DNA of 64,000 bases, taken from assembly GCA_004431415.1 (NCBI GenBank), contig QPMI01000281.1:1-64000 (forward strand), in the 5' to 3' direction. Numbering within the stretch: the first letter of the stretch is position 1; every line of letters starts with the position of its first letter. Position numbers and translations under genes: made by a program. Shown piece after piece: positions 1 to 64,000 of the stretch. Under the pieces are notes generated by a model, which ran no database searches, was not told the origin of the DNA, and saw nothing but the letters and a program-made list of their open reading frames with translations. The stretch comes from Cyanophora paradoxa CCMP329. Taxonomy: Eukaryota; Plantae; Glaucophyta.

Positions 1-3000
1 TCAAGGAGGGCCTCGCCAAGGAGGGCGGCATGCTCGACACCGACGAGGAGCTCTTCCGCCGCTTCACCCAGCAGGTCCCCGGCGCCCCGCGCCCCCCGCC
101 CGCCCCCCGCCGAGCCCGCCGCGCAGGTCCAGCGCAACCTGCACGTCATCTTCACGATGAACCCCGCCAACCCCGACTTCACCTCCCGCCACCAGGCCCG
201 CCCGCCCGCCCGCACCCTCCCTCTCCCGCTGCCCCTGCCGCCTTCGAACGCCGCGGCAGACGAGCCCGGCGCTCTTCAACCGCTGCGTCATCGACTGGTT
301 CGGGGACTGGTCCGAGGCGGCCCTCCACCAGGTGCCCCCGCCCCGCCCCGCCCCGCCCCGCCCCGCCCGCCGCGCCCCTCGGCGGCCGACGGGGGCGGCA
401 GGTCGCCTTCGAGTTCACGCGGACGCTGGAGCTGGACGACCCCGCGTACGCGCCCCCCGAGGGCGTCGAGCTCCCGAGCCTGGGCGGGGCGGGGGCCCCC
501 GGGCAGCGGGAGGCGCTCGTCTCCTGCATGGTCGCCATCCACACGTCGGTGGCGGAGGTGAGCGGGGCGCTGGCGCGGCGCACGGGCCGCTCGCACTACG
601 TCACCCCGCGCCACTTCCTCGACCTCATCCGGCACTACGTGGCGCTCTACCGGGAGAAGCGGGGCGAGCTGGAGGAGCAGCAGCTGCACCTCAACCTGGG
701 CCTCCAGAAGCTGCGCGACACCGAGCAGCAGGTCGCCGAGCTCCAGGGCCAGCTCGCCCGCCAGGAGGCCGAGCTGGAGGCCAAGAACCGCGCCGCCAAC
801 GAGAAGCTCGACCTCATCGCCCGCAAGCAGACCGAGGCCGAGCGCGACAAGAAGGAGGCGCAGGCGATGGCCGCGCAGGTCGCCGCCCAGCGCCTCCAGA
901 TCGACGAGCGCAAGACGTGCGCCCCGCGCAGCCGCCGGCCGCCGGCCGCCCCGCCCGGGCGGGGCTGAGCGGGCGGGGGGCGCGCAGGCGGGTTGCGACG
1001 GACCTGGCGGAGGCGGAGCCGGCGGTGCGGGAGGCGCAGAGCAGCGTGATGGGGATCAAGAAGAGCGCGCTGGACGAGCTGCGCTCGATGGCGAACCCGC
1101 CGGCGCTCGTGAAGGTGACCCTCGAGGCGGTCTGCCTCATCCTGGGGCAGGACAAGGGGGACCTCTCGTGGGACGCCATCCGCCGCCGCATCCGCGAGGA
1201 GACCTTCATCGCCTCCGTCGTCGACTTCCGCACCGAGAAGGCCCGCCCGCCCCGCCCCGCCCTCCGCCCCGCGCCCCGCCCCCGGCGAGGCCATGGCGCA
1301 GCTGCGGAACGCGACGCGGCACTTCGTGGAGAAAGAGTACATGGGCAAGGCGGACTTCACGCACGCCGCCGTCGACCGCGCCTCCAAGGTCGCCGGGCCC
1401 CTCTTCAAGTGGCTCTCCGCCCAGCTCCACTACTCGGACATCCTCAACCGCATCGAGCCGCTCCGCAACGAGCTCGCCGCCCTCGAGGAGCAGTCCCGCG
1501 ACATGGAGCTCGCCTGCGCCCAGCTCGAGGAGAAGGCCCGCGCCCCGCGCCCCGCGCCCCTCCGCCTCCTTCCCCGCGCGGGGCGCCTGAGGGCGGGGGC
1601 GGGCAGGTTGCGGAGATCGAGGGGGCGATCGGGGTCTTCAAGGGGGAGTACAGCGCCCTCATCGGGGAGACGCAGGAGATGAAGGCGGAGATGGGCCGCA
1701 TCCGCGCCAAGGTCGACCGCTCCATGGCCCTCATCCGCTCCCTCGCCTTCGAGACGGCCCGCTGGGAGGAGGGCAGCGCCGCCTTCGCCGCCCAGATGGC
1801 GAGCCTGCCCGGGGAGGCCCTCCTCGGCGCCGCCTTCCTCACCTACATCGGCTACTTCGACGAGGCGCACCGCCGCCAGCTCCTCACCCGCTGGCGCGCC
1901 CGCGCGGGGGACCTCCGCCTCCGCGCCCGCCCCGAGCTCAGCCTCGTCGAGTACCTCTCGACGCCCGAGCAGCGCCTCGAGTGGCACGCCTGCGGCCTCC
2001 CCGCCGACGACCTCTCCGTGGAGAACGCGGTGCTGCTGGAGCGGCACGGGCGCTTCCCGCTGATCGTGGACCCGTCGGGGCACGCGACGGCCTTCCTGGC
2101 GGCGAAGCTCAAGGCGCGGCGGCTCGCCTCGACCTCCTTCCTCGACGAGGCCTTCCTCAAGAACCTCGAAGCCTCGCTGCGCTTCGGCTGCCCCCTCCTC
2201 GTCACCGACGTCGAGGGGTACGACCCCGTCCTCAACCCCGTCCTCAACCGCGAGGTCCACAAGACGGGCGGGCGCGCCCTCATCCGCCTCGGGGACCAGG
2301 AGATTGACTTCAGCCCGTCCTTCGCGCTCTTCCTGAGCACGCGGGACCCCGCCGCGCACTTCCCCCCCGACCTCTGCTCGCGGGTCACCTTCGTCAACTT
2401 CACGGTGACGCCGTCGGGCCTGCACGCCCAGTGCCTCGCCGCCGTCCTCTCCGCCGAGCGGCCCGACGTCGACGAGAAGCGCCGCGACCTCCTCCGCCTC
2501 CAGGCCCGCCCCGCGCCCCGTCCCCGCCCCCGCCCCCGCCCCCTCGTGACGGCGGGGGGGGCAGGGGGAGTTCCGGGCGCGGCTGCGGCGGCTGGAGCAG
2601 CAGCTGCTGGGGGCGATCTCGGAGAGCAAGGGGAACCTGCTGGACGACGCGTCGCTGGTGGAGACGATGGAGGCCCTCAAGCGCGAGGCCGCCGACGTCA
2701 GCGCCAAGATGGAGCAGGCCGCCGACGTCATGCGCGACACCGCCGCCGTCTCCGAGTCCGCCCCCCGCCGCCCCTCCCCCGCCCGCCCCCCGCCCCGCCC
2801 GGCTCACGGGCCCGTGCCGGCGCAGGCTGTACGGGCCGGTGGCGGCGGCGAGCACGCGCCTCTACTTCGCCGTCGAGTGCCTCGCCGAGGTCCACTTCCT
2901 CTACCAGGTGCACCCCGCACCGGCCGCGCGCCCCGGCCGGCCTGAGCGCGGGGCAGGTCTCGCTGCCGACCTTCCTCGAGATCTTCGCGGGGGTCCTCGC

Positions 3001-5914
3001 CGAGGGGAAGGGCGCCGGCCCCGCCGAGCCGGCCACCCGCATCGACGCCCTCCTCTCCTCCCTCTTCCGCGCCGTCTGGCGGTGCGCGCGTCGGCGGGGG
3101 CGCCCCGGGGTACATCCCGCCCGGCCTGAGGGGCGCGGCGCGCAGGCGGGTGGGCCGGGGCCTGCTGCAGCGGGACCACCTCCCGTTCGCGCTCCGCCTG
3201 GCGCAGATCCGCCTGCAGGGGACCCCCGACGAGTTCGGCGACGCCCTCCTCGAGTTCCTCACCAAGGGCCCGCCCCATCGCCTCGCCCGCCGCCTCGGCC
3301 CCGCCCCTTCCCGCCCGCGCTGAACCGCCCTCGCTCGCAGGCGTGGCGCACGGGGCGGCGGCGCCAGCGGTGGAGGCGTCGCGCCTGCCGGAGGCGATGC
3401 GGACGGAGGAGCGGCGGGCGCAGCTCGCGCGCCTGGCCGCCCTCCCCGCCTTCGGCCCGTCGTGGCCCACGCCTCGGACCCCGCCAACGCCGACGCCTGG
3501 CGCGCCTTCCTCGCCGCCCCGGACGCCGAGAGGTGCCCGAGCCTCCCTTCCTCCGTCGTCCGCCCCGCCGGCCCCCGACGCCGCGCAGCGCGGTGCCGGA
3601 GTGCTGGGAGGGGCCGGCGGCGCCCCTCTCGCCGGTGGCGGGGCGCTGCGGCGGCTGCTGGTGGTGCGGGCGCTGCGGCCGGAGCGCGTGGTGGCGGCCG
3701 GCTGGCGCCTGGTGGCGGCGGTCTTCGGGGAGGACTTCATGCAGCTGCCGCTGCAGGCCGACCTCGCCGCCGTCGTCGAGCGCGAGGCCGCCGCGGGGCA
3801 GCCCCTCGTCCTCGTCTCCACCCGCGGCCACGACGCCAGCGCCCGCGTCGAGGCCCTCGCCGCCGCCGCCGGCCGCCCCGTCTCCAGCGTCGCCATGGGC
3901 TCCCCCGAGGGCGTCGCGGCGGCGGAGCGGGCGGTGAGCGCGGGGGCGCGGGAGGGCCGCTGGGTCCTCCTCAAGAACGTCCACCTCGCCGCCGGCTGGC
4001 TCGCCGCCCTCGAGAAGCGGCTCCTGCGGCTCCAGGCGCACCCCTCCTTCCGCCTCTTCCTCACCAGCGAGCTGCACCCCGCGCTCCCGGCGCCCCTGCT
4101 GCGCGCCTCCCACGTCCTCCTCTACGAGGCGCCCGTCGGGATGCGCGCCGCCGTGCAGGGCGCCCTCGCCGCCCTCCCCGCCGAGCGCGGCGAGCGCGCC
4201 CCCGTGGAGCGCGCCCGCCTCCACTTCCTCCTCGCCTGGTTCCACGCCCTCGTCCAGGAGCGCCTCCGCTACTGCCCCCTCGGCTGGTCCCGCCCCTACG
4301 AGTTCGGCGACGGCGAGCTGCGCGGCGCCCTCGAGGCGCTGGACGTCTGGGTCGACGCCGCCGCCGCGGGGCGGCCGCACGTCGACCCCGCCAAGCTCCC
4401 CTGGCGCGCCCTCCGCACCGTCGTCCTCGCCTGCTACGCCGGCAAGGTCCGCCCTCGCGCGCTCGCCGGCCCCCAGGCGGGGCGCTGAGCGGGCGGGGCG
4501 GGGCAGGTGGACAACGCGTTCGACGAGCGGCTCATGGCGGCGCTCCTGTCGCGCCTCCTCGTTCCCGCCGCCTATGAGCTCGCCTTCCCCCTCGTCCAGC
4601 CGGCCCCGGGCGCCGCCTCCCTCCTGGGCGCCCCGGAGGGCACCGCCCGCCCCGCCTTCGCCGCCTGGGCGGGGCACCTGCCGCCGATGAACCCGCCCAC
4701 GTGGCTCGGCCTGGCGGGGAGCGCGGAGGGCCGGCTGCTGGGCGCCCTCGGGGCGCGGGCGCTGCGGACGCTGGCGCAGCTGCAGGGGGCCCTCGACGAG
4801 GACGAGGAGCTCGCGTACGCGCCGGCCGCCGGCCCCGCCGCCCCGCACCACTCCCTCGAGGCCGACGCCCGCGCCTGGCTCGCCGCCCTCCCGAGCGCCC
4901 TCCCGCCCTTCGCCGCCGCCGCCGCCGCCGCCTCCGATCCCATCGCCCGCTGCCTCCTCCGCGAGCATTCCGCCGGTGCGCCCCCGCCCGCCGGGCCCGC
5001 CCCCGCCCGCCCCGCGCGGCCCCTGAGGGGCGGGGCAGGGGCGCGCGTGCTGGCGCGGGTGCGGGCGGACCTGACCCTCGCGGCCGCCGTCTGCGCCCAC
5101 TCCGCCCGCCCCACGAACGCCTCCCGCGCCCTCCTCGCCGCCCTCCAGGCGCCCCTACCCCCCTCCCATCCGCCCCGGCCCCGGTCCCTCACCCTGCGCT
5201 GCAGCGGGACGTGGTGCCTGCGGAGTGGCGCGAGGCGGCCGGCGAGCGCGGCGCCGCCGCCCTCTCCTCCGTCCACGCCTGGGTCGCTGACCTCGTGCGG
5301 CCGCCGTGCCCCGCCCGCCGCGCCGCCATCGCGCGCTGAGGGAGCGCGGGGCGCAGAGAGCGCGGCTGGAGCAGCTGGCGGGGCTGGCGAAGGCGGGGGG
5401 CGCGGGGGAGCTGGGGGCGGCGGCGCGGGCCGGCGTGTGGCTCGGGGGCCTCTTCGCGCCCGAGGCGTACGTGACGGCGACGCGGCAGGCGGTGGCGCAG
5501 GCGGAGCGCTGGCCCTCGAGGCCCTCCGCCTCTCCCTCGCCGTCGGCGCCCCCGCCGCCCCGGTCCCCGCGCCTTCGCCCTCCGCGGCCTCGCCCTCGAG
5601 GGCGCCGCCTGGAGCGCCCCGGAGGGCCTCGTCCCTCCGACGCCCTCGCCTCGCCCCTCCCGGCCACCGCCCTCTGCTGGGAGCGCGCCGACCCCGCCGC
5701 CGACGCCGGCGCCGCGGCCGACACGCTGCTGGCCGTCGCCGGCGGGGACGGGGAGGGGGCCCCCGCCGGGGGCGCCGTGCAGCTCCCCGTCTACCTCGAC
5801 GGGCAGCGCGCGCAGCTGCTCTTCGCCGCCTCCCTCCCCGCCTCGCCCTCCCTCGGGCCCTCCCTCTGCCTCCAGCGCGGCGCCTGCGTCACCGCCTGGC
5901 AGGCCCCCCTTTAG
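1..5914 (+). CDS. DYNC1H1: Cytoplasmic dynein-1 heavy chain, 3' portion (end of AAA4, stalk/MTBD, AAA5, AAA6, C-terminal domain); 5'-partial, about 17 introns
   Basis: Spliced motifs VQRNLHVIFTMNP, TSPALFNRCVIDWFGDW, HYVTPRHFLDLI, LNLGLQKL, DLAEAEPAV, ELRSMANPP, RFPLIVDPSG, PDLCSRVTFVNFTVT, GRWVLLKNVHLA, FLLAWFHALVQERLRY. TSPALFNRC..WFGDW fits dynein-1 rather than IFT dynein-2. Stop at 5912-5914. Confidence 0.95.
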
Positions 5915-6321
5915 GCACCTCGCGCCCCCCGCACTCAGATGTGAGCCTCGTGCGCATCTGATCATGACACGTGATGTCCGCTGGCGGCTAGCTAGCAGCA
6001 CATCTGTGGTCAACGCGGGGCGACTCGGCAAAACGGGATTCACTCGAATTCGAATTCAGGACTCGGGATTCACGTGAATCGCCGGCAGGTACAAGACGCA
6101 GGTCAGCCCATAACTCCGAGGGCTCATCGGCTGTAGCTGCATGCGCAGAATCTCATTAAAAATTGCTTGGAAGCTTAACGTTGAATTTAGTTACGTATAC
6201 TTGGTGATCCCAGAAGCCAAATACTCAGTAGTAGTACGCAAGGAAGACTGCACATGCATATGTACACGGACAACTTGGCAAGATTCAATGATTGACAGTA
6301 AACCGCTGAGCCTGAGATTAA

Positions 6322-27471: not shown

Positions 27472-29200
27472 ATGTTCTGCGCGGGGATCCTGCCGCGCGG
27501 CAGCGGCGTCGCCAGCGGCGCGGCGCTTAGCCTCCCGGTAGATGCGCGCGCGAGGAGCTATCAGCGCGCGCCGGCAGCAAGCGCCTTTCTTGGCCAGGCC
27601 GTCCGGGCAAAAACGTTCCTGCACACGCCCCAGCGGATCGTGCGCTTCGTCGGACCAGTATGTGCGGCGGACGAATTCATGATTAAAAAGTCAGTTCCAG
27701 TTTGCTCGTTTGAGCCACGTGCCTCGCTGAGCGGCGCACAGGCTGCAGTCGATCGAAAAGAACTTCGACGAGCTCACGCGCCGGCTCGGAGATCCTGAGC
27801 TTGCATCCAACCCCGATGAGCTCATGCGCGTCGCTCGAGCTCGGTCTGAGCTTGAAGAGGTTGTCACTGCCTTCAACCGCTACAAGGAGGTCCAAACTCG
27901 TGCGTGGGTTCCGCCGCTTTCGCGGCCCGCATTCCTCAGCTGATTTTCCGCGCTCGCAGAAATCGAGGATGCTAAAGTTCTCATCGAGGAGAGCGGCGGC
28001 GATCGTGATCTCGTGGCGATGGCAAAGGAAGAATTGTCCATGCTCGAGGACGAGCTGGTGGGTCACGTTACCAGGCCACAAGCCAGGTTGATTGTGCTTA
28101 TAATCCCCGGACAGGTCCAGCTCGAGAAGGATGTGAAGCTCATGCTGCTTCCAAAGGACCCGCTTGATGAGAAGAATGTTCTCCTCGAAATCCGTGCTGG
28201 AACAGGAGGTGATGAGGCCAGCATTTGGGCTGGAGACCTTGTTCGGCTCTACACGAAATATGCAGAGACGCAGAGCTGGAAGGTTAAGCTGGTATCAGAG
28301 TCGGAAGGCGAGCATGGGGGTTACAAAGAGTGCATTCTGGAAGTCCAGGGCGAAAAGGTCATAAGCTAGTGAGCTCCAAAAATCGCTTAAAGCACTAAAT
28401 ACATGTTGCAGGTTTACAGCAAGCTTAAGTGGGAGGCTGGCGTCCACAGGGTTCAGCGTGTGCCTGCAACGGAGTCGCAGGGTCGGGTTCACACAAGCAC
28501 AGCAACAGTTGCAATCATGCCGTTCGTTGATGAGGTGTGAGAATCTTCTTTGAATTCAACTGGATCACTCTTCCCCCTCGTGTGCTTATTGCTCCGTGGG
28601 CAGGTCGATGTGCATATCGATCCAAAGGATATAGAGTTGAAGACAGCGCGGTCAGGGGGTTCTGGTGGGCAGAACGTGAACAAAGTCGAAACAGCCGTCG
28701 ATCTTATTCACAAGCCCACCGGCATCCGCATTTTCTGCACACAGGTAACCCGTGTTCTGGCGGAAACCCTGCAGCTGCCTTTGAACTCGAGAGCAGGAGC
28801 GGTCTCAGTTGCAAAATCGTGCGCGGGCAATGGAAATTCTGCGGGCTAAGCTTTTCGAGATCAAGCTTCAAGAGCAGCAGGCCGAAGTTCGTTCTCTGAG
28901 GCAGTCGCAAGTGGGCACTGGTGCCCGTTCGGAGAAGATCCGAACTTACAACTACAAGGACAACCGTGCCTCTGATCATCGCATCAACCAGAACTTCTCG
29001 CTGCAGCAGTTCCTTGATGGTGCAGGTCCTGCATTTTTTGAAGTCATATTTATATTAACACAACCACAGGCGATATTGATGATGCTATTCAATCAATGAT
29101 TCTCCGTGACCAAGAGGAGCGCCTTGCGGTACTTTCCCCACCTCGCAGAATGACGTTGGTTCTGACGTCGTTATGCCAGGCACTTGCCGCGTCAGTCTAA
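27472..29200 (+). CDS. prfA: Plastid-type peptide chain release factor 1 with transit-peptide-like N-terminus
   Basis: [37 protein letters not shown] (PxT), [16 protein letters not shown] (GGQ), [14 protein letters not shown]; N-terminus [20 protein letters not shown] is Ala/Ser/Arg-rich. Confidence 0.93.
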
Positions 29201-29499: not shown

Positions 29500-30189
29500 T
29501 CAAGAGCTAGGGGTCTCCCCGAGGTTCTGCTGCATGGACGCGAGGCTGCCCATAAGCGCATTCTTCATGGCCTCCTGAGACCGGTTGTATGCATCCTTCC
29601 ACGCCTCCTCGAGGGCAGCAGACAGGGCCTCCGCGCCGAGTGCGACAGCCTCGTCGTCAACAGAGACAGAGATCGGCTGAGACTTGCCGTCGACTGCAAA
29701 GGAATATCAAGCTTAGCTCTCTGATGAAGGCAGCGCAGCGAAGAAGTTTCGCACCGGTGACTTTGACGTGGCCATCAGCAGCCTCGCCAGTAATGCGCTC
29801 CTCGCCGAGCTTCGCCTGCAGAGCAGCAGCCTGCGCCATTCTCAGCGGCTAGGTCTACGAAAGCGCGCAACTGAAAAACACGCACGTTCTTCTGTGCCTC
29901 CTGCATCGCCTTCATCATGTTCGCCATGCCGCTGCGATCGAGTTTAGATATTTTGGCGCCCCGGGAGGGAAGCAGCCCGATCTTCGCACCCAAGGCCGCC
30001 GAAGCCACCGCCCTCCTTGTTGCCGCCGCCGAAGAGGCCAGCGACCGGGGCCTCATAGGCGAACCGCGATGGCGCCTCGGGGGCCGCGCGCCGGATGGAA
30101 GCAATACGCTCCCGGCTAACGAACGAGCTGTTGAGCGCGAGCGCCTGCTTAGCGCCTGAGGCAAGCGGGACGGGGCAGACGAAGGCCAT
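29500..30189 (-). CDS. Plastid-targeted YbaB/EbfC family protein (STIC2-like)
   Basis: MAFVCPVPLASG transit-peptide-like start; GLFGGG..GMANMMKAMQEAQK, AAALQAKLGEERITGEAADGHVKVT, EAMKNA. Confidence 0.85.
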
Positions 30190-30440: not shown

Positions 30441-33400
30441 TTAGCTGGAAAGGGAGCGAATCTTGCTCTCAAGAGCATCGAGCTCCTCCAGTGTGTTGGC
30501 CCCCTCCACCTTCCAGAGGCTTTCGGCAGGCACTTGGAAGCCCTCCACAATCTTGCCAGCAGCTACAAGTTGTGAGACGAAATCTGTCGCGTAGTACTCG
30601 TATGCGACAGGATCCTCCTTTGTTTGCGTGGGAGAGATGGATGCCAAGGCCTCCAGATAGTCGCCAGCTCGGACCATCACAATGCCAGAGTTGAACTCGC
30701 CAATCGAACGCAGCTGCTCCTTCTTGAAATGAGAGCCATCTGCATAGGTGCGTTCCTCACCATCATCCATCTTCTCAATGACCTTGCGCTCCACAATGTC
30801 AATCACAGTACCGCCCGTGCCACGAACAATGCGTCCGTAGAAACCAGCATCAGGAAGAACGCCAGTGACAATAAGGCCGCTGTACTTTTCTCCATAGCGA
30901 GCCTTGTTGGCAGAGTGAGCAGTGATGATCTGTTTGATGAGAGCTGCATCGACGCCAGGGTTGTCGGCGTACAGGACGAGGACATCTCCCTCAAAGGCAC
31001 CAAGGCCCTGAAGTGCCAGGAAGACAGCATGGCCTGTCCCAAGGCGCTCCTGCTGCAGGACATACGTGTGGCCATCCACACCGAGAGTCTTGGTAACCAG
31101 ATCACTGGCAAAGCCCACGACGACAATAGAGTCCAGGCCGACTTCTGCAACAGCAGAAAGGGGCTTCTCTGCCATTGGTCGCCCCAGGAATGGGTAGATG
31201 ACCTTCGGCGTGTCGGCCTTGAACCGAGAGCCTTGCCCAGCTGCAAGCATAACAGAAACCATGCCATTCTGATTGGCAGCCTCGACATTGAATGGCCGCC
31301 CAGAAGGGGGAACGATTCCAGAGGCGACGACAAGTTCAGACAGACTCATCTTGGCAACGTCCTTCGTAGAGGGGAAGGGGGCCGGACGGGGCCCAATACC
31401 AGCACAGATATCGTAGACAGCACCAGACACCTCGTAAGCAAGGGCCTTCGCCTGCTCCTTCGTAGGTGCCTCCGCGAAAACACGAATAATGTCCTCTGTG
31501 CCTGATGCACGTGCAAACGAACGACCACCAGAGTACTTTTTCACTATGGTATCGATCGCATCTTGCAAACCAGGCGGATCTGGTTGCAAAAAAGTGTTTG
31601 TTTTTGAAACCCAGCATGGGAAGGCAACGAAGACTTACTAACTGCGCGGGTCTCGATCTCGTTTGTAGTAAGGACGTAGCGGTCTGCCACCTTGACCTTC
31701 AGGAGAAGGGATGGCATGTCCTTGTAAATGGCATCCCAGTCGGAGGCAGACCAACCGTTGTGGGCCAGAACAGCTTCCACAAGGAGCAGGTCGGAGATAG
31801 CATCGCCAACTGCTTGGTTCATTAGATCGTGGATGCCGACCAGAGTCTCAAAAGCATGCTGGGCGTCCGAGTTCCTAAGGCTTTGGTCAGGATTCAAAAG
31901 TCTTTATCAGGAGAAATCATGCTCGCAAACAACGCACCCCGCCTGCTTTGCTGCAGCCTGCTTGATCTTCTCGATCGCAGAGTTCTGGAACAGAACAGTC
32001 CCATGTCCATTAGATTCGAAATAGAGGCCAATGTCGAAAGACACGGCCCGATGGTGCAAGTGCCGAACACCTGCAGCTGCAGTGAACCAAAGACAGCATT
32101 GTGCTACAGGCAGACAGAGCAAACCAGTGGGTGACCAGTTGACAGGCACGTTTAGGTGCTTCGTGATGTACTTGGTGGACGAGCCGTTGGCATACGCTGT
32201 CTGCACAACACCGATGGAGACCTCGTCGGCGCAACCGAGCCTTCGGAGCTGATCGATAATGAACTTCGTGTAGAGGCACATTATCTTGTCGCCATCAAGA
32301 AGATGGAATTTGCCGTCATCGTCTACGTGGCCAAACACTACACGATCAACGTCTCCATCGATGCTGGCCATGCGACGACCCTTGTCGATCGCGCCATCGA
32401 AGCCACGGGGCAACCGCTTGTTGACATTGACGTAGTCCGCCCCCACCTCGTAGTTGACCATAGCGCCATCCCCACAATTCCGAACCTCGACCTTCAGCAC
32501 GTCGGCGATCTCCTTGGCAAGTCGGGATATCTTAACGCCTCCGACGCCATTTGCGCAGTCGATCACAAGGCTGTTCTCCCAGTGATCTTGGCTAGCGGAT
32601 GGCCGCAGAGAGATGAGGCGCTTGAATGCCGACGCGAGCTTGGAATAATAGTCATCCTCGTTGAAGATCTTCCCACCGTTGAGGTTGGTCTCTTGAACGA
32701 TGAGGTGCAGCTGGGGGGTCGTGAGCTGCTCAAAGGACACAGCCTTGGCGGACGTGAGCTCTACGCCAGCACGGACGAGCTCGAGGAAGTGAGCGCCCGT
32801 GGTGCGGTTGTCGCGAGCGAGAAAGACAGTAGAGGGGGCTAGAAGGTCGAGGTTCAGCTCGGCTGCGACACGCCGAAGCGTATCAGGTAGCGCATCGTTC
32901 TCCGCGTTGCAGATCGCTGTGGCGACGCTCTCCCAGGACGACTCCAACATCTCGCCCGAAACGTCGATGAGCTTAGCTCCGTTGTCACCTGTGGTGGGGT
33001 TCGAACGCAAGGCGCGTGGCACGGGTGGATCTGGAGCTCACATGCGGGGTTGTGCGAAGCAGTGATCATAACGCCAGTCACCTTGCCGCCGCTCTTCTTC
33101 GACCGTCTACGGCACAGAAATGAAAGAGTTAGCGCAGAGCGCCCCGCGCGTGCCGAAGCGAGGGTTGCGCACAGAGCGGCAACGATGCCAAGCCGGAACA
33201 TGACGGGCTCCAGATCGTCGGCATGCCCGCGGAAGCCGATGGTTCCATAGCGGAACTGCTTGCCCTCAGGCTTCGGATACTTCTTCGCTGCTTCGAGAAC
33301 CGCGTCCATCATGCGCGCCAGCTGCTCCTCGTCTCCGGGGGTGCGTGCCGCGGTCGTGAGCGCGGCCGAAGGTGTCGGTTGGGATGCAGAGCTGGTCGCA

Positions 33401-33695
33401 AACTGCCGCGCCGCTACGTAACGCGCCGGCGCCGGGCGCGGGCTGCTGAATCCGAAGGATGCGGCCCGCTGCCTGCGCGCGCTGTCGGCACCAGAGTTGA
33501 GGCCAGCCGCGGCGCGCGGCGCTTACCGGAAGAGCCGAGCGACGGCTGGCTGAGAGGACCTGCGCCCAAGCGCGCTCAGCGCGCAGCGAAGTGTGGAACG
33601 GTGCAGCGCCAGCCGCACCGGAGCGAGGATCGGATCACGTTGGACGGGGCTTCTTTGCGTGCTGCAACGGGATGCAGCAACGAGACGAAGGGCAT
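30441..33695 (-). CDS. Fusion: presequence + phosphoacetylglucosamine mutase (PGM3/AGM1) + GlmU-type GlcNAc-1-P uridyltransferase domain (no acetyltransferase domain)
   Basis: Mutase motifs RYGTIGFR, MITASHNP, IDCANGVG, SIDGDVDR, GLYFESNGHG, NQAVGDAISD, RSFARASGTEDIIRVFAEA. Then, in the same exon, MLAAGQGSRFKADTPKVIYPFLGRPM, QQERLGTGHAV, LVLYADNP, YGRIVR, EFNSGI, EYYATD, VEGANTLEEL. Upstream exons 33619-33695 and 33527-33559 splice in frame through GT-AG introns. Confidence 0.9.
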
Positions 33696-34028
33696 CGAAT
33701 CGAAAACCGGTTCCCGCCGCGTGAATCCGACGAACTGCCCCCCCTTTGCCTTCTTCCCCCCCTTCCCCCCCCCCCCCCCCCCCGCCTTTTGTATTTGGTC
33801 AATTGGAAGGCCTCTCCGGGTACGTAGTTCTGCAACGACCGGGCAGCAAATTCGAAATCGTTTCCCTGAAGCGCGGCCCCCGGCCCTCACAGCGTCTAAA
33901 TAGCATTCGTAGCGCCCGACGCCGGCTTCCAGTCCGGCCCCAAGGCACTCCTAGTTAGCTAAGCGCCACGGCCGCGGGGGCAGTTAGCTAAGCGCGACGG
34001 CCGCGGGGGCAAACATTCGGCCGGCCAA

Positions 34029-59899: not shown

Positions 59900-62800
59900 A
59901 TGGCGGCCCAGCTCGCGCCGGGCGCCGTCTACAAGAGCGCAGTGCAGACGGCGATCGAGGCTGGAGCCAACATCGACCGCGTTCGCGAGCTTCTCATCGC
60001 AAGCCGGGAGCGCCTGGTGCGTACGCGTCAGCGTGTGACGCGCACGCGACCCAGGCTCTAAAACGGCACTCCTCCGTCGTTACCCGTTCCCCTTGTCGTC
60101 GCGCGCCTCCCCGCTCGTGACGCGCTGCTCGACGCCTCACTCCCCTCCGCCGCTTGGGTGCAGGACTGGGAGACGCTCACGGCGGCCATCAATACGGGAA
60201 ATCTCAAGGTCGTGGAGCTGTGCTTCAGTCATGCCCTCGCGTCGCCCCACTCCGACGGCGACAAGGAGATCCGCGTCGCGGGCCATTGGGTGCAGGCCGC
60301 GCTCGACAGGAGCCCCGAGCTTGCGCGGTGCGCGTATATGACTCCCACCTCGGATTTTGAAATCCATTCGGCGCCGAACCCCACCCGGCCCGCAGGTACC
60401 TTCTTGACTTCGGCAAGCGGTTCGCTGGTGGGGGCCTCGGGAAGGATACGCGGGGCGCTGATGCCTTTTTCGTTTCAGTTATGAGTCGAATGACTCTGCT
60501 CCGGGCCTTCGAGCCCTCGTCCGGTTCATCCGAAAGGGTGACGAAGAGCGTGCCCTGAAGCTCATGGACCTCGGCGTCGAGTGCGACGTCGACGCCTGCA
60601 GGTTCGAGCCGCTTGGTGCGTCAAAGTCTTTCTTTATTTCAGTTTCCTTTCCTTCCAATGCGGACACAATTCCTGAGGCGTCGTCTACAGATCCACTGGT
60701 GGTCGCGCTGGAGGGTGGGCAGCGGAAAATTGCAAAGCGAATTTTGGAGAAGCGCGAAAAGGGCGAGTATGTGCGCAGCAACGAGCGCGGTGCGCATGGC
60801 GTTCGTCGGGCCCGGTCGCTCGGAGGCTGAAAGCAGTCACCCGGCCTGGCGCAGCTGTTGTCCTCCGTCGCGCCCTGCAGAAGCACTACGAAGACATTGT
60901 CGAGATTCTCCTTGCTTCGCCCGAGTACGGCTCGGTGACCCAGGAGGGAGGGGAGCCCCTGCTCCGAGGTGCGCCCGTGCCCGTGCAGCCGCCTCCTCCT
61001 TCGGGGTTTTTGATCGAGCGCGCGCTACGCAGCTTTTAAGCTGCAGGATGGCTTCCAGACCGTGGACCAGCTGCTCCAGGCGGTCAAGGGTGACGTGCGG
61101 GACAATCTGCTCCTCTTCGGGACGCGCTTCGCCGCCGCGACGGGTGCCAACGCGTTCACCCGCTTCCTCCTCGACCGTATCCAGAACCCCAGCTGCCTCC
61201 ACCGTCCGAAGATCATGGGCACGGTGCGCCGCCGACCCGCTCGGCCGCCTCCACGGCGTGTCGACGCGCCGCTCGGCAGTACGAGTCGCCGCGCTCGTCG
61301 CTGGAGATTGCGCTCAAAAAGCGCTACCCCGGCGTCGCGAAGATGATCCTCGAGAAGTGGACATGCTCCGTGCGCGCCTCCCGCCGGCGCGTCCCCGCTG
61401 GCGCTCACACGCGCATGGGGCGCGCAGGCGGAAAATATTGAGGAGGGCTGCAATGCCCTGCGCCTCGCCCTCCATCAGAAGTGCGCGCTCGCGCGCGCTG
61501 CGTCCCCCGCCCCTCCGCCCCCCGCCCCTCACCCCTCACCCCTCATTCCCCCTCAGGTACTTCGACATCGCGGCGGAGCTGCTGGGGAAGGGCGCCTGCG
61601 AGACGGGCGGCGAGTTCGACAACGAGATCCGCGAGACCGCCATCCAGGTCCGCCGCGCCCCCATCGGACCCGCCCCGCCCCGCCCCGCGGTCTGACAGCG
61701 GGCGGCCTTCTCCGCCGCTGCCGCGCAGCTCGTGCTGCAGGAGGCGGGCGACGACTTCGAGCTCACCCGCAAGGTCCTCGCCGCCACCAAGCCCAAGAAC
61801 ACCACCAAGGAGGCCTGCCCGCCCGCCCGCCGCCGCGCGCCGGCGCGCTCCTAACCCCGCCCACAGATGATGCTCTTCGACGCGATGCTGGCGTGCTCCT
61901 CCCGCGGCCTCGGCGCGGCCGTGCGCTTCATCATCAACGAGGCGCTGTCCCACGACGCCCCGAACTACGCCAAGGTGCGCGGGCGCCCCGCCGGTCGCGG
62001 GCCTCGTCCGCCCCGCCGCGAGCCGGGCCGGCGGCAGTTCGTGGAGGACGCGATCCGCTACGCGGTGCAGAACAAGCACGTCGACGTTGCCGCCTTCCTC
62101 CTCGAGAAGGCGCGCCGGCCGCCCCGGCCCCCGCTCCCCCGCCTGCGCCGCTGACGGGCGGGCAGGCGCTGAAGGGGAAGCCGGAGCGGGAGGGCCCAAT
62201 CCTGGTTGCGGCGGTGAACGCGAAGAGCGAGGAGTGCCTGGAGGCGCTCGTGCAGCACGGCTTCAACGTCGACGTCATGGAGACGCAGACCGACATGCAC
62301 CTCTCCCTCCCCTCCCGCGTCCGCACCGGCCCCCCGCCTGCCGGCTCCGGCCTTCGCGAGCCGCCCGGCGCCCCTGAGGCCTCGCGCCGGCCCGCAGAGC
62401 CTGCACCTCTTCGCGTACGCGATCGAGCGCGGCACGCTGCGCCAGGCGGAGCTCGTCGCCCGCACCAAGCCGCGCCTCCTCCTCACCCACACCCACTCGG
62501 AGGCGCGCCGCGCCCACGGCGGCCTCCGCGCGGCGCGCGACCCCGCTCACGCCCCGCCCCGCCGAGCAGGTCCTCGCGGAGCTGTACACGCGCCCGTCGG
62601 CGGGCGCGGTGGCGTTCGAGAGCCTGAGCCCCGCCCAGAGCGCCGCCGTCCACGAGCTCTTCTTCACGGTCCGCGCGGAGCACCTCTGCGCGCCTCCGCC
62701 GCCGCGCCTAACGCGGCGCGCAGGCGGACTTTGCGGAGGACTGGAAGCTGCGCGCGAGCGCGGCCGCCGTCATCTACATCCTCGGCATCGACGGCGCCAA

Positions 62801-63590
62801 GGTCCGCCCGCCGCTCTGAAGATACAGAAGAGGGGCCCGCCCGAACGGGTCGCGCCCCGCAGGTGAAGAACAGCGCGGCGGACTGGGACCAGGCGCACTA
62901 CGAGCGGGCCCTCGCCCGCTTCGCCTCGCACACCGACAAGCTCGTCCCGCACATCATCCGCCCCGGTCCGCACCCGCCATCCGCCTCCCTGCCCGCTTGC
63001 CGGCCGCCCGCCCCGACGACCCCTCGCAGTGCGCGCCAAGCGGGGCGAGTCCATCGAGATGAACCTGGAGGGCCTCCTCTACGAGCCCCACGAGCGCCCC
63101 GCCGCCATCCTCCAGTCGGCCTCCGCCGTGCGCCCCGCGCTGCGCTCTGCCCCCTCGTCCTTGCCCTCAACGCACCCCCGCCAGACTCCGGGGAGCGGCA
63201 CCAAGCGCAAGATGCCGCCCTCGGCCTCCTTCGCTGTGCGCGAGCCCCGCCCGATCTCGCGCCATGCCTCGCAAAGCTCACCGGCGTGCAGGTGGCCCAG
63301 AAGAGTGCTCGTGGCATGACCGAGAAGCTGGCGCCCCCGAATGCCCTCAAAGACCGCAAGACCAGCGAGTTCCAGCTCGAGGTGCCTCGCTTTCAAAGCG
63401 TGCCATATGTTGCCCCCATGGCCAGCTCCCCACTGACCGCCCGTGGCTGCGCATACACGAGCAGGCGGTCAGCGAGCTCCTGGCGTGCCCCTCATGGGTG
63501 GGCCTGAACGTCACCACCCGCGACAAGTTCCTCGCCTTCCTCGCCGAGCTCGAGCCCCTCGTCCTTGCCGAGACCACCGCCCAGTTCTAG
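59900..63590 (+). CDS. Ankyrin-repeat-like multi-exon protein
   Basis: Repeated helical motifs TLTAAINTGNLKVVELC, PLVVALEGGQRKIAKRIL, AIRYAVQNKHVDVAAFLL, ILVAAVNAKSEECLEALVQHGFNVD; stop at 63588-63590. Confidence 0.65.
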
Positions 63591-64000
63591 GCTACTAGTG
63601 GCCCGTCCGCTTTACATGTCCCCTGAATATGCTGCTGAACATACAGACAACCAAGTACGGGCTTAACTTGACCATGGTTGTGAGACGAGGTCAGCAGCGC
63701 TCAGCAATTTAAAAATTTGCGTTTGCAAATTGCGCAAATCACACGTGCACATGCCTCGTGATCGCGATGATATCGCCATCCATCACTCCGGATCCGCAAC
63801 ACTCCGTACACGTATAATCCGTTCCATGGCCCTAGCCCACTCCAACGGAGTAGAAGAAGAGCACAGAACCACAACACTCGCCAATGAGTCGCCATCTACA
63901 TGTACCCTCCCCGACCTTGCTATATACCAAGCCCAACCTCGTTGTACGTTATCTATTTTATAATAGGTTTATTCCGTGCCAGCAGTACAGACCAAGCTGC

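Follow-up and report, generated by a model that had tools for sequence, protein, structure and literature searches.

The window, meaning the whole 64,000-nt stretch of Cyanophora paradoxa DNA analysed here, carries on its minus strand a gene of eight exons which join into a single open frame of 948 residues. Its product comprises an N-terminal presequence, a mutase of the PGM3/AGM1 type and a C-terminal uridyltransferase of the GlmU type. In the direction of transcription the features are as follows.

33696..33742, minus strand: 5' untranslated leader; RNA-like contigs extend as far as 33731, 33736 and 33742, and there is no upstream ATG
33619..33695, minus strand: exon 1, start codon and presequence residues 1–26, with Phe3; residues 1–12 uncharged
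33560..33618, minus strand: intron 1, 59 nt, GT..AG; joint in X1, X2 and X9, none in X15
33527..33559, minus strand: exon 2, 33 nt, presequence residues 26–37
33473..33526, minus strand: intron 2, 54 nt, GT..AG; joint in X1, X2 and X9, none in X15
33313..33472, minus strand: presequence part of exon 3, residues 37–90; Val-x-Ala at 56–58 is the likely processing site
33307..33312, minus strand: Met91-Met92, position of the ancestral PGM3 start, aligned with the start methionines of Rhodelphis
33173..33312, minus strand: remainder of exon 3, beginning of PGM3 domain I
33107–33172 and 32989–33041, minus strand: introns either side of exon 4
33042..33106, minus strand: exon 4, catalytic Ser loop TASHN with Ser154
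32125..32988, minus strand: exon 5, PGM3 domains I–III with metal loop DGDxDR; Pfam AMG1_II and AMG1_III
31938..32070, minus strand: exon 6, sugar-binding loop YFExNGH; its upstream intron is 32071–32124
31875–31937 and 31580–31638, minus strand: introns either side of exon 7
31639..31874, minus strand: exon 7, end of domain III and start of domain IV
30441..31579, minus strand: exon 8, PGM domain IV (RxSGTE), linker, GlmU-type uridyltransferase and stop codon
about 31277–30444, minus strand: GlmU-type N-terminal uridyltransferase domain, within exon 8
33749..33835, no strand assigned: brief intergenic region containing a run of G, common to this gene and a divergent plus-strand transcript starting near 33836

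The first-pass annotation had placed exons at 33619–33695 and 33527–33559 and a third from 33472, separated by GT-AG introns and giving about 90 in-frame residues ahead of MMDAV. This structure is borne out, as contigs of three RNA-like sequencing runs from three studies (X1, X2 and X9) show introns 1 and 2 removed at the very positions predicted, and exactly 90 residues precede Met91-Met92. No joint across either intron is present in the DNA-like run X15; the labels RNA-like and DNA-like are the tool's guess, and the splice joints themselves show the spliced RNA content. Five further introns are confirmed likewise by RNA-like contigs, and the stop codon after the uridyltransferase domain is found inside RNA contigs. 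The contigs begin 36–47 nt above the presequence ATG, at 33731–33742 (worked out from the contig tables), and apart from those of Met1, Met91 and Met92 there is no ATG in the spliced leader. Single contigs of 2980 nt in X2 and 2916 nt in X9 cover the whole length between the leader and the 3' end, and the fusion of PGM3 and uridyltransferase is therefore one transcript. A chance construction of the splice model is ruled out by the RNA splice joints, and a gene-calling artefact behind the fusion by the single contigs together with the orthologous fusions described below.

The presequence had been called hidden, which it is not. A representative search with exon 8 retrieved the EukProt model tig00001206_g7496.t1 of Cyanophora paradoxa (P0001), which has an identical 90-residue leader, and the leader was therefore already in the public model. 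The start of exon 1 is shared by this model and by the 2015 proteomics entry 8098_cds:1892, which together rule out the leader as previously unseen. At the last intron the public model falls short by about 23 residues; these contain the Arg motif of domain IV and are supported by RNA. Queries for the homology searches were single exons or open reading frames or the Rhodelphis protein, and the joined spliced model was analysed by local scripts only.

The first half of the protein is a eukaryotic PGM3/AGM1, containing AMG1 domains II and III and PGM domains I and IV, and exon 5 matches fungal AGM1 structures in PDB (E 4e-56). As compared with PGM3/AGM1/DRT101 (PDB 4bju, 2dka), all four domains are shared and the catalytic serine, the metal, sugar and phosphate loops and the domain IV arginine are kept, while the 90-residue leader and the C-terminal uridyltransferase are additions. 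Identity to animal and fungal PGM3 enzymes is 39–46%, and the host-type character claimed for the mutase is thus upheld by Pfam domains, homologue identity and structure match alike. Two substitutions near the sugar loop set it apart from its homologues, namely arginine at position 449, where lysine is found in 114 of 114 matched PGM3 homologues, and serine instead of alanine in the loop itself. The bacterial GlmM model TIGR01455 gives a partial match of 37.5 bits to the largest exon ORF, against a cut-off of 447.55.

The second half matches positions 3–237 of the 452 in the GlmU model TIGR01173, where the protein ends, and the score is far below the equivalog cut-off. The uridyltransferase motifs (G-x-G-x-R, Lys, Gln, Asp, Glu, Asn) are present in the alignment to 4fce and 3fww, and all motifs of this fold are shared with the bacterial bifunctional GlmU (TIGR01173; PDB 4fce, 1hv9). 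In contrast to that enzyme, which has a left-handed beta-helix acetyltransferase, the Cyanophora protein contains no C-terminal hexapeptide acetyltransferase domain, and named bacterial GlmU proteins are only 33–38% identical to its uridyltransferase. No match to Pfam UDPGP (the UAP1 family) was reported for exon 8. Identification as GlmM, complete GlmU or UAP1 is ruled out by the TIGR01455 score, the absent acetyltransferase and the missing UDPGP match, respectively. In both halves the catalytic motifs are intact, the residue roles being those we take over from AGM1 and Escherichia coli GlmU; neither active site looks impaired, and activity is predicted.

In bacteria, glucosamine 6-phosphate is converted into glucosamine 1-phosphate by GlmM and is then acetylated and uridylated by GlmU, whereas in eukaryotes acetylation by GNA1 comes first and is followed by PGM3 and UAP1. 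The fused protein would need GlcNAc-6-P, because it fits the acetylate-first order with a last step of the GlmU type. The organism does not lack Mur genes, as the 2019 Cyanophora genome paper reports MurA to MurG together with a eukaryotic-type glmS, tig00021357_g20765; its gene list, in which glmM and glmU had been proposed as the genes to look for, holds neither and jumps from glmS to murA (PMC6704402). The supplements of that paper also contain, both named by best-hit label only, a second PGM3-like gene (tig00000237_g20475.t1), which could serve the cytosol, and an LpxA gene (tig00001065_g6744), whose best hit is alphaproteobacterial.

These data suggest that the enzyme probably makes UDP-GlcNAc from GlcNAc-6-P in the plastid stroma for MurA and MurG, filling the gap left by glmM and glmU. 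The nuclear gene would yield a 948-residue precursor with a Phe-type transit peptide that leads it into the stroma and is cut probably near residue 58–60. There GlcNAc-1-P would be formed from GlcNAc-6-P by the PGM3 half, and the GlmU-type half would convert it into UDP-GlcNAc, the MurA/MurG substrate for the plastid peptidoglycan wall. The fused enzyme would in this way replace cyanobacterial GlmM and GlmU via the eukaryotic order of steps, while GlcNAc-6-P may be supplied by a plastid GNA1-type enzyme, by import or by salvage of wall fragments. The fused Cyanophora enzyme is the strongest candidate for producing the sugar from which the wall is built, a step that published pathway lists lack. 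The earlier proposal that a host mutase was retargeted to replace GlmM stands in so far as the mutase is host-type, bears a leader and is present in cyanelles; it does not stand if the fusion is meant as an invention for the glaucophyte wall.

The same fusion is found, leaderless, in Rhodelphis marinus and Rhodelphis limneticus (EukProt m.940 and m.29165), with domain order and junction as in Cyanophora and identities of 42–44% for the mutase and 53–55% for the uridyltransferase. It is also encoded at two syntenic intronless loci (P0017 and P0025), probably from Cyanidiales judging by gene order, compactness and tree position, whose mutase halves are very divergent and which have Arg-rich extensions of their own of about 85–105 residues. 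As these probable Cyanidiales fusions contain no methionine near the start of the mutase, their extensions must be translated unless spliced. A stand-alone uridyltransferase, 35–52% identical to the Cyanophora half, occurs in many red algae (Galdieria, Gracilaria, Porphyridium, Rhodosorus, Timspurckia and Pyropia), where database labels only name it UDP-N-acetylglucosamine diphosphorylase/GlmU; it belongs to the same clade as the Cyanophora half but is unfused to a mutase. In a quick tree the uridyltransferases of Cyanophora, Rhodelphis and red algae form one clade with a support of 100, apart from bacterial GlmU. Inside this clade also falls a bacterial-looking sequence (P0010) from an 8.7-kb metagenome contig, adjoining an ORF of 2200 residues with a SIS domain. 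No cyanobacterial names are among the matches listed, and the uridyltransferase tree holds no cyanobacterial sequence; PRK14360, presumably the cyanobacterial GlmU model, scores below eight other GlmU models against the Cyanophora uridyltransferase, and scans of bacterial genomes gave no donor. In the mutase tree, which is poorly sampled, the hypothesis that the fusion arose once is neither supported nor rejected (AU p 0.10).

A glaucophyte-specific fusion is ruled out by the copies in Rhodelphis and the probable Cyanidiales. Peptidoglycan is undocumented in red algae (PMC10784329), and the occurrence of the same fusion in lineages without known peptidoglycan is an observation that speaks against a wall role. 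As both the fusion and the uridyltransferase occur in such lineages, the fusion predates wall supply or is independent of it, and the plastid role of the Cyanophora copy comes from its leader.

The first conserved motif of PGM3 (YGTxGxR) lies a median of 26 residues from the start in 105 homologues, the longest distance being 62. In Cyanophora it is at residue 112 counted from Met1 and at 21–22 residues from Met91/92, the position at which both Rhodelphis orthologues begin, unlike the Cyanophora protein with its leader. By motif distance and the Rhodelphis alignment, the internal methionine pair, which had been suggested as the start of a cytosolic isoform, sits at the ancestral start, and the 90-residue leader is, on sequence comparison, an addition ahead of it. 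Among the sequences seen the leader is specific to Cyanophora, and no other glaucophyte orthologue of the fusion is among the matches listed in the homologue and representative searches.

The context of Met1 is weak (T at −3, C at +4) and that of Met92 is strong (A at −3, G at +4); a purine at −3 is present in three of four nearby putative starts, a count that is illustrative only. Translation that skips Met1 and begins at Met92 would give a leaderless cytosolic copy like that of Rhodelphis, and it is plausible that one gene would then supply glycosylation in the cytosol as well as the plastid wall. Such dual use, which is compatible with the stromal role, is a serious contender at somewhat below even chances. 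It draws support from the three ATGs and their contexts, from the ancestral nature of Met91/92 and from the fact that no second Cyanophora copy of the uridyltransferase is among the matches listed, but the second PGM3-like gene stands against it, and contigs cannot reveal a second start site. A broader scenario, namely that a host PGM3 was joined, in the common ancestor that glaucophytes share with the red lineage, to a GlmU-type uridyltransferase acquired from a non-cyanobacterial bacterium, and that Cyanophora sends the enzyme to plastid and cytosol by way of the second start codon, is put forward tentatively and is, taken as a whole, rather doubtful.

Even inside the plastid the enzyme might have another main sink or serve salvage, its product going to lipid A precursors through LpxA or its substrate arising from GlcNAc recycled during wall turnover. 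The plastid genomes of Cyanidiales may keep glmS, lpxA and lpxC. The LpxA gene listed for the Cyanophora genome, the obligatory Arg-rich extensions of the probable Cyanidiales fusions (red algae without known peptidoglycan) and the lack of both an acetyltransferase domain in the protein and a GNA1 entry in the cyanelle proteome table are in keeping with this alternative. It is nevertheless unlikely, since peptidoglycan is the documented UDP-GlcNAc sink here, with no other source of the sugar nucleotide listed, the best hit of LpxA is alphaproteobacterial and the Cyanidiales mutase halves have diverged so far.

Targeting to the plastid is suggested by the leader itself. Residues 1–83 consist of 21% alanine, 16% serine, 12% arginine and 12% proline with one acidic residue, whereas every 83-residue window of the remaining protein has at least four acidic residues; together with Phe3, which is shared with the neighbouring gene, this agrees with the Ser/Ala/Arg-rich, acid-poor character ascribed to it in the first-pass annotation. 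The first charged residue is Arg13, preceded by 12 uncharged residues, and the hydrophobic moment of residues 1–18 is only 0.10; the first 20 residues are neither amphipathic nor Arg-rich, as a mitochondrial presequence would be, and an amphipathic stretch with a moment of up to 0.62 is located at residues 17–38. In cyanelle transit peptides phenylalanine occurs among the first ten residues, the median length is 63 residues, and the cleavage site is marked by Val-x-Ala or Arg (PMC4510345). The Cyanophora leader resembles them (PMC4510345, PMC2222254) in its phenylalanine, its hydrophobic uncharged start and the Ala/Ser richness of an acid-poor extension before the conserved domain, and likewise in its cut motif (Val-x-Ala at residues 56–58) and length, with the predicted cut near 58–60 close to that median. 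It differs in having proline at position 2, where alanine is common, although one transit peptide with Pro2 is given in Table 1 of PMC4510345. The leader part of exon 3 had no usable match in the Atlas search. The leader is thus, as judged from these features, a genuine one of the cleavable type, with cleavage predicted.

The protein is also present in purified cyanelles. Table S2 of PMC4510345 lists 8098_cds:1892 as 'phosphoacetylglucosamine mutase'; its first 26 residues are those of exon 1, and its body matches exons 5–7. This entry, of low abundance (about 1.7 fmol), was quantified in three of three Triton-washed, periplasm-free cyanelle samples and in two of three whole cyanelle samples, with a normalized ratio of 1.69, a value in the range spanned by the neighbouring stromal enzymes in the table (PMC4510345). 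Mitochondrial markers fall to 0 (MPP-beta), 0.13 (ADP/ATP carrier) and 0.10 (VDAC) after the wash (PMC4510345). As the wash strips mitochondrial markers and the mutase is kept, the plastid is favoured over the mitochondrion, and the plastid location claimed for the protein is strengthened accordingly. MurG is present in the same table, while the proteome tables yielded no entry for GlmS or for a GNA1/acetyltransferase, the mutase is absent from the N-terminus table, and the main text neither contains the word 'glucosamine' nor discusses the protein (PMC4510345). Cytosolic and nuclear proteins survive the same Triton wash (beta-tubulin 1.21, histone H2B 1.21, SAH hydrolase 1.08; PMC4510345), an observation that weighs against the plastid location. 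Carry-over of the mutase from the cytosol is unlikely in our estimation, because the contaminants are very abundant and a housekeeping enzyme would hardly be expected at half their level.

A mitochondrial presequence, with UDP-GlcNAc provided for a mitochondrial lipid A pathway of the kind reportedly present in Arabidopsis, is still less likely than a different plastid sink. The Arg-rich, nearly acid-free leader, its amphipathic stretch at residues 17–38, the alphaproteobacterial-like LpxA in the genome and the resemblance of Arg59-Gln-Phe to an R-2/R-3 site would all suit it. The likeness of RQFATS to a mitochondrial cleavage site, pointed out earlier, does hold, but this site is equally compatible with the cyanelle Val-x-Ala rule and decides nothing. 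The uncharged first 12 residues with Phe3 and the retention of the protein (1.69 versus 0–0.13 for the markers) argue against mitochondria, and the proteome table of PMC4510345 turned up no names of TCA-cycle enzymes. A purely cytosolic enzyme, translated from Met91/92 with untranslated upstream exons and detected in cyanelles as carry-over, is very improbable, for although Met1 is in a weak context, cytosolic contaminants persist in washed cyanelles and no peptide of the leader or of the mature N-terminus is on record, an open frame of 90 codons with transit-peptide composition and Phe3 is kept across two introns.

The enzyme types of both halves, the public gene model and the table entry of 2015, named only as mutase, were already known. 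Newly recognised are the fusion in Rhodelphis and the probable Cyanidiales and the stand-alone uridyltransferase across red algae. No literature was found on the fusion, its plastid role, the red-lineage clade or a Cyanophora glmU, and prior mention is possible. Plastid peptidoglycan pathways have been described from MurA onward, and the source of plastid UDP-GlcNAc is unstated in the literature found (PMC6704402, PMC10784329). For two missing steps the gene described here names a testable enzyme, and a third step, by an acetyltransferase, an importer or a salvage kinase, is predicted. The uridyltransferase clade unites red algae with glaucophytes and Rhodelphis and is possibly the trace of an early gene transfer within Archaeplastida. 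If the proposed reading is true, the last two UDP-GlcNAc steps for the plastid wall would be carried out by a host-built enzyme on the eukaryotic route and not by cyanobacterial GlmM and GlmU, which would clearly exemplify how a host enzyme can be enlisted to build the wall of an endosymbiont.

The public EukProt model of the fusion gene, tig00001206_g7496.t1, differs from the RNA contigs at the last intron (window 31511-31579, minus strand), where it lacks about 23 residues, the domain IV Arg motif among them; according to these contigs, the intron is the shorter, 59-nt form. Exons 3-4 of the gene are also skipped in the 2012 model listed in the proteomics table (Table S2 of PMC4510345, entry 8098_cds:1892).

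Exon 6 (31938-32070, minus strand) of the mutase part encodes Arg449, which lies near the sugar site and is replaced by lysine in all 114 matched homologues, as well as a sugar loop containing serine, where 118 of 119 homologues possess alanine. These two changes could affect the substrate range of the mutase.

At the 5' end of the gene, one contig from X1, an RNA-like run showing its splice joints, connects position 33045 back to 33736, with a single additional letter (a sense-strand G). This contig may represent a circularised cDNA in which a cap-derived G marks a start at 33736; being a single contig, it could also be an artefact. The gene is separated from a divergent coiled-coil gene by the following region, which is likely a promoter common to both.

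33749-33836: spacer, about 95 bp in length, containing a long G-run

The window is gene-dense in its middle, with a G+C content of about 0.52-0.60 as compared to 0.68-0.81 at its much richer ends (1-6000 and 60001-64000). Two genes neighbour the fusion gene.

29503-30189, minus strand: gene of 171 residues with three introns, RNA-confirmed
27472-29100, plus strand: gene for a peptide chain release factor (PCRF match)

The 171-residue protein, which has a transit-peptide-like start with Phe3 and weak YbaB/EbfC matches, is probably a plastid YbaB/STIC2-like protein. The release factor has an Ala/Arg-rich start with Phe2, and this gene and the two beside it form three adjacent genes all bearing plastid-type leaders.

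Outside Cyanophora, the stand-alone uridyltransferases of Galdieria (P0003, P0278 and P0283) start with a hydrophobic, membrane-anchor-like segment, and several other red algal ones carry long acidic low-complexity N-termini. Fused divergent and stand-alone copies co-occur in the same hot-spring metagenomes (loci L004/L008 and L005/L011), which hints at the retention of two paralogues in some Cyanidiales, one of them with an organelle-type extension. P0030 (NCBI, 950 aa), in which a GlmU N-terminal domain is joined to a bacterial-type phosphomutase, falls outside the algal uridyltransferase clade in the tree and combines these two enzymatic steps in a fusion of independent origin. The only non-algal-looking member of that clade in the tree is P0010, encoded on a metagenome contig.

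L001:22-8641: bacterial-looking contig with a 2201-residue ORF (GlmS-like SIS domains, plus receiver domains) adjoining P0010

The lineage represented by this contig is possibly the donor or the recipient of the algal-clade uridyltransferase.
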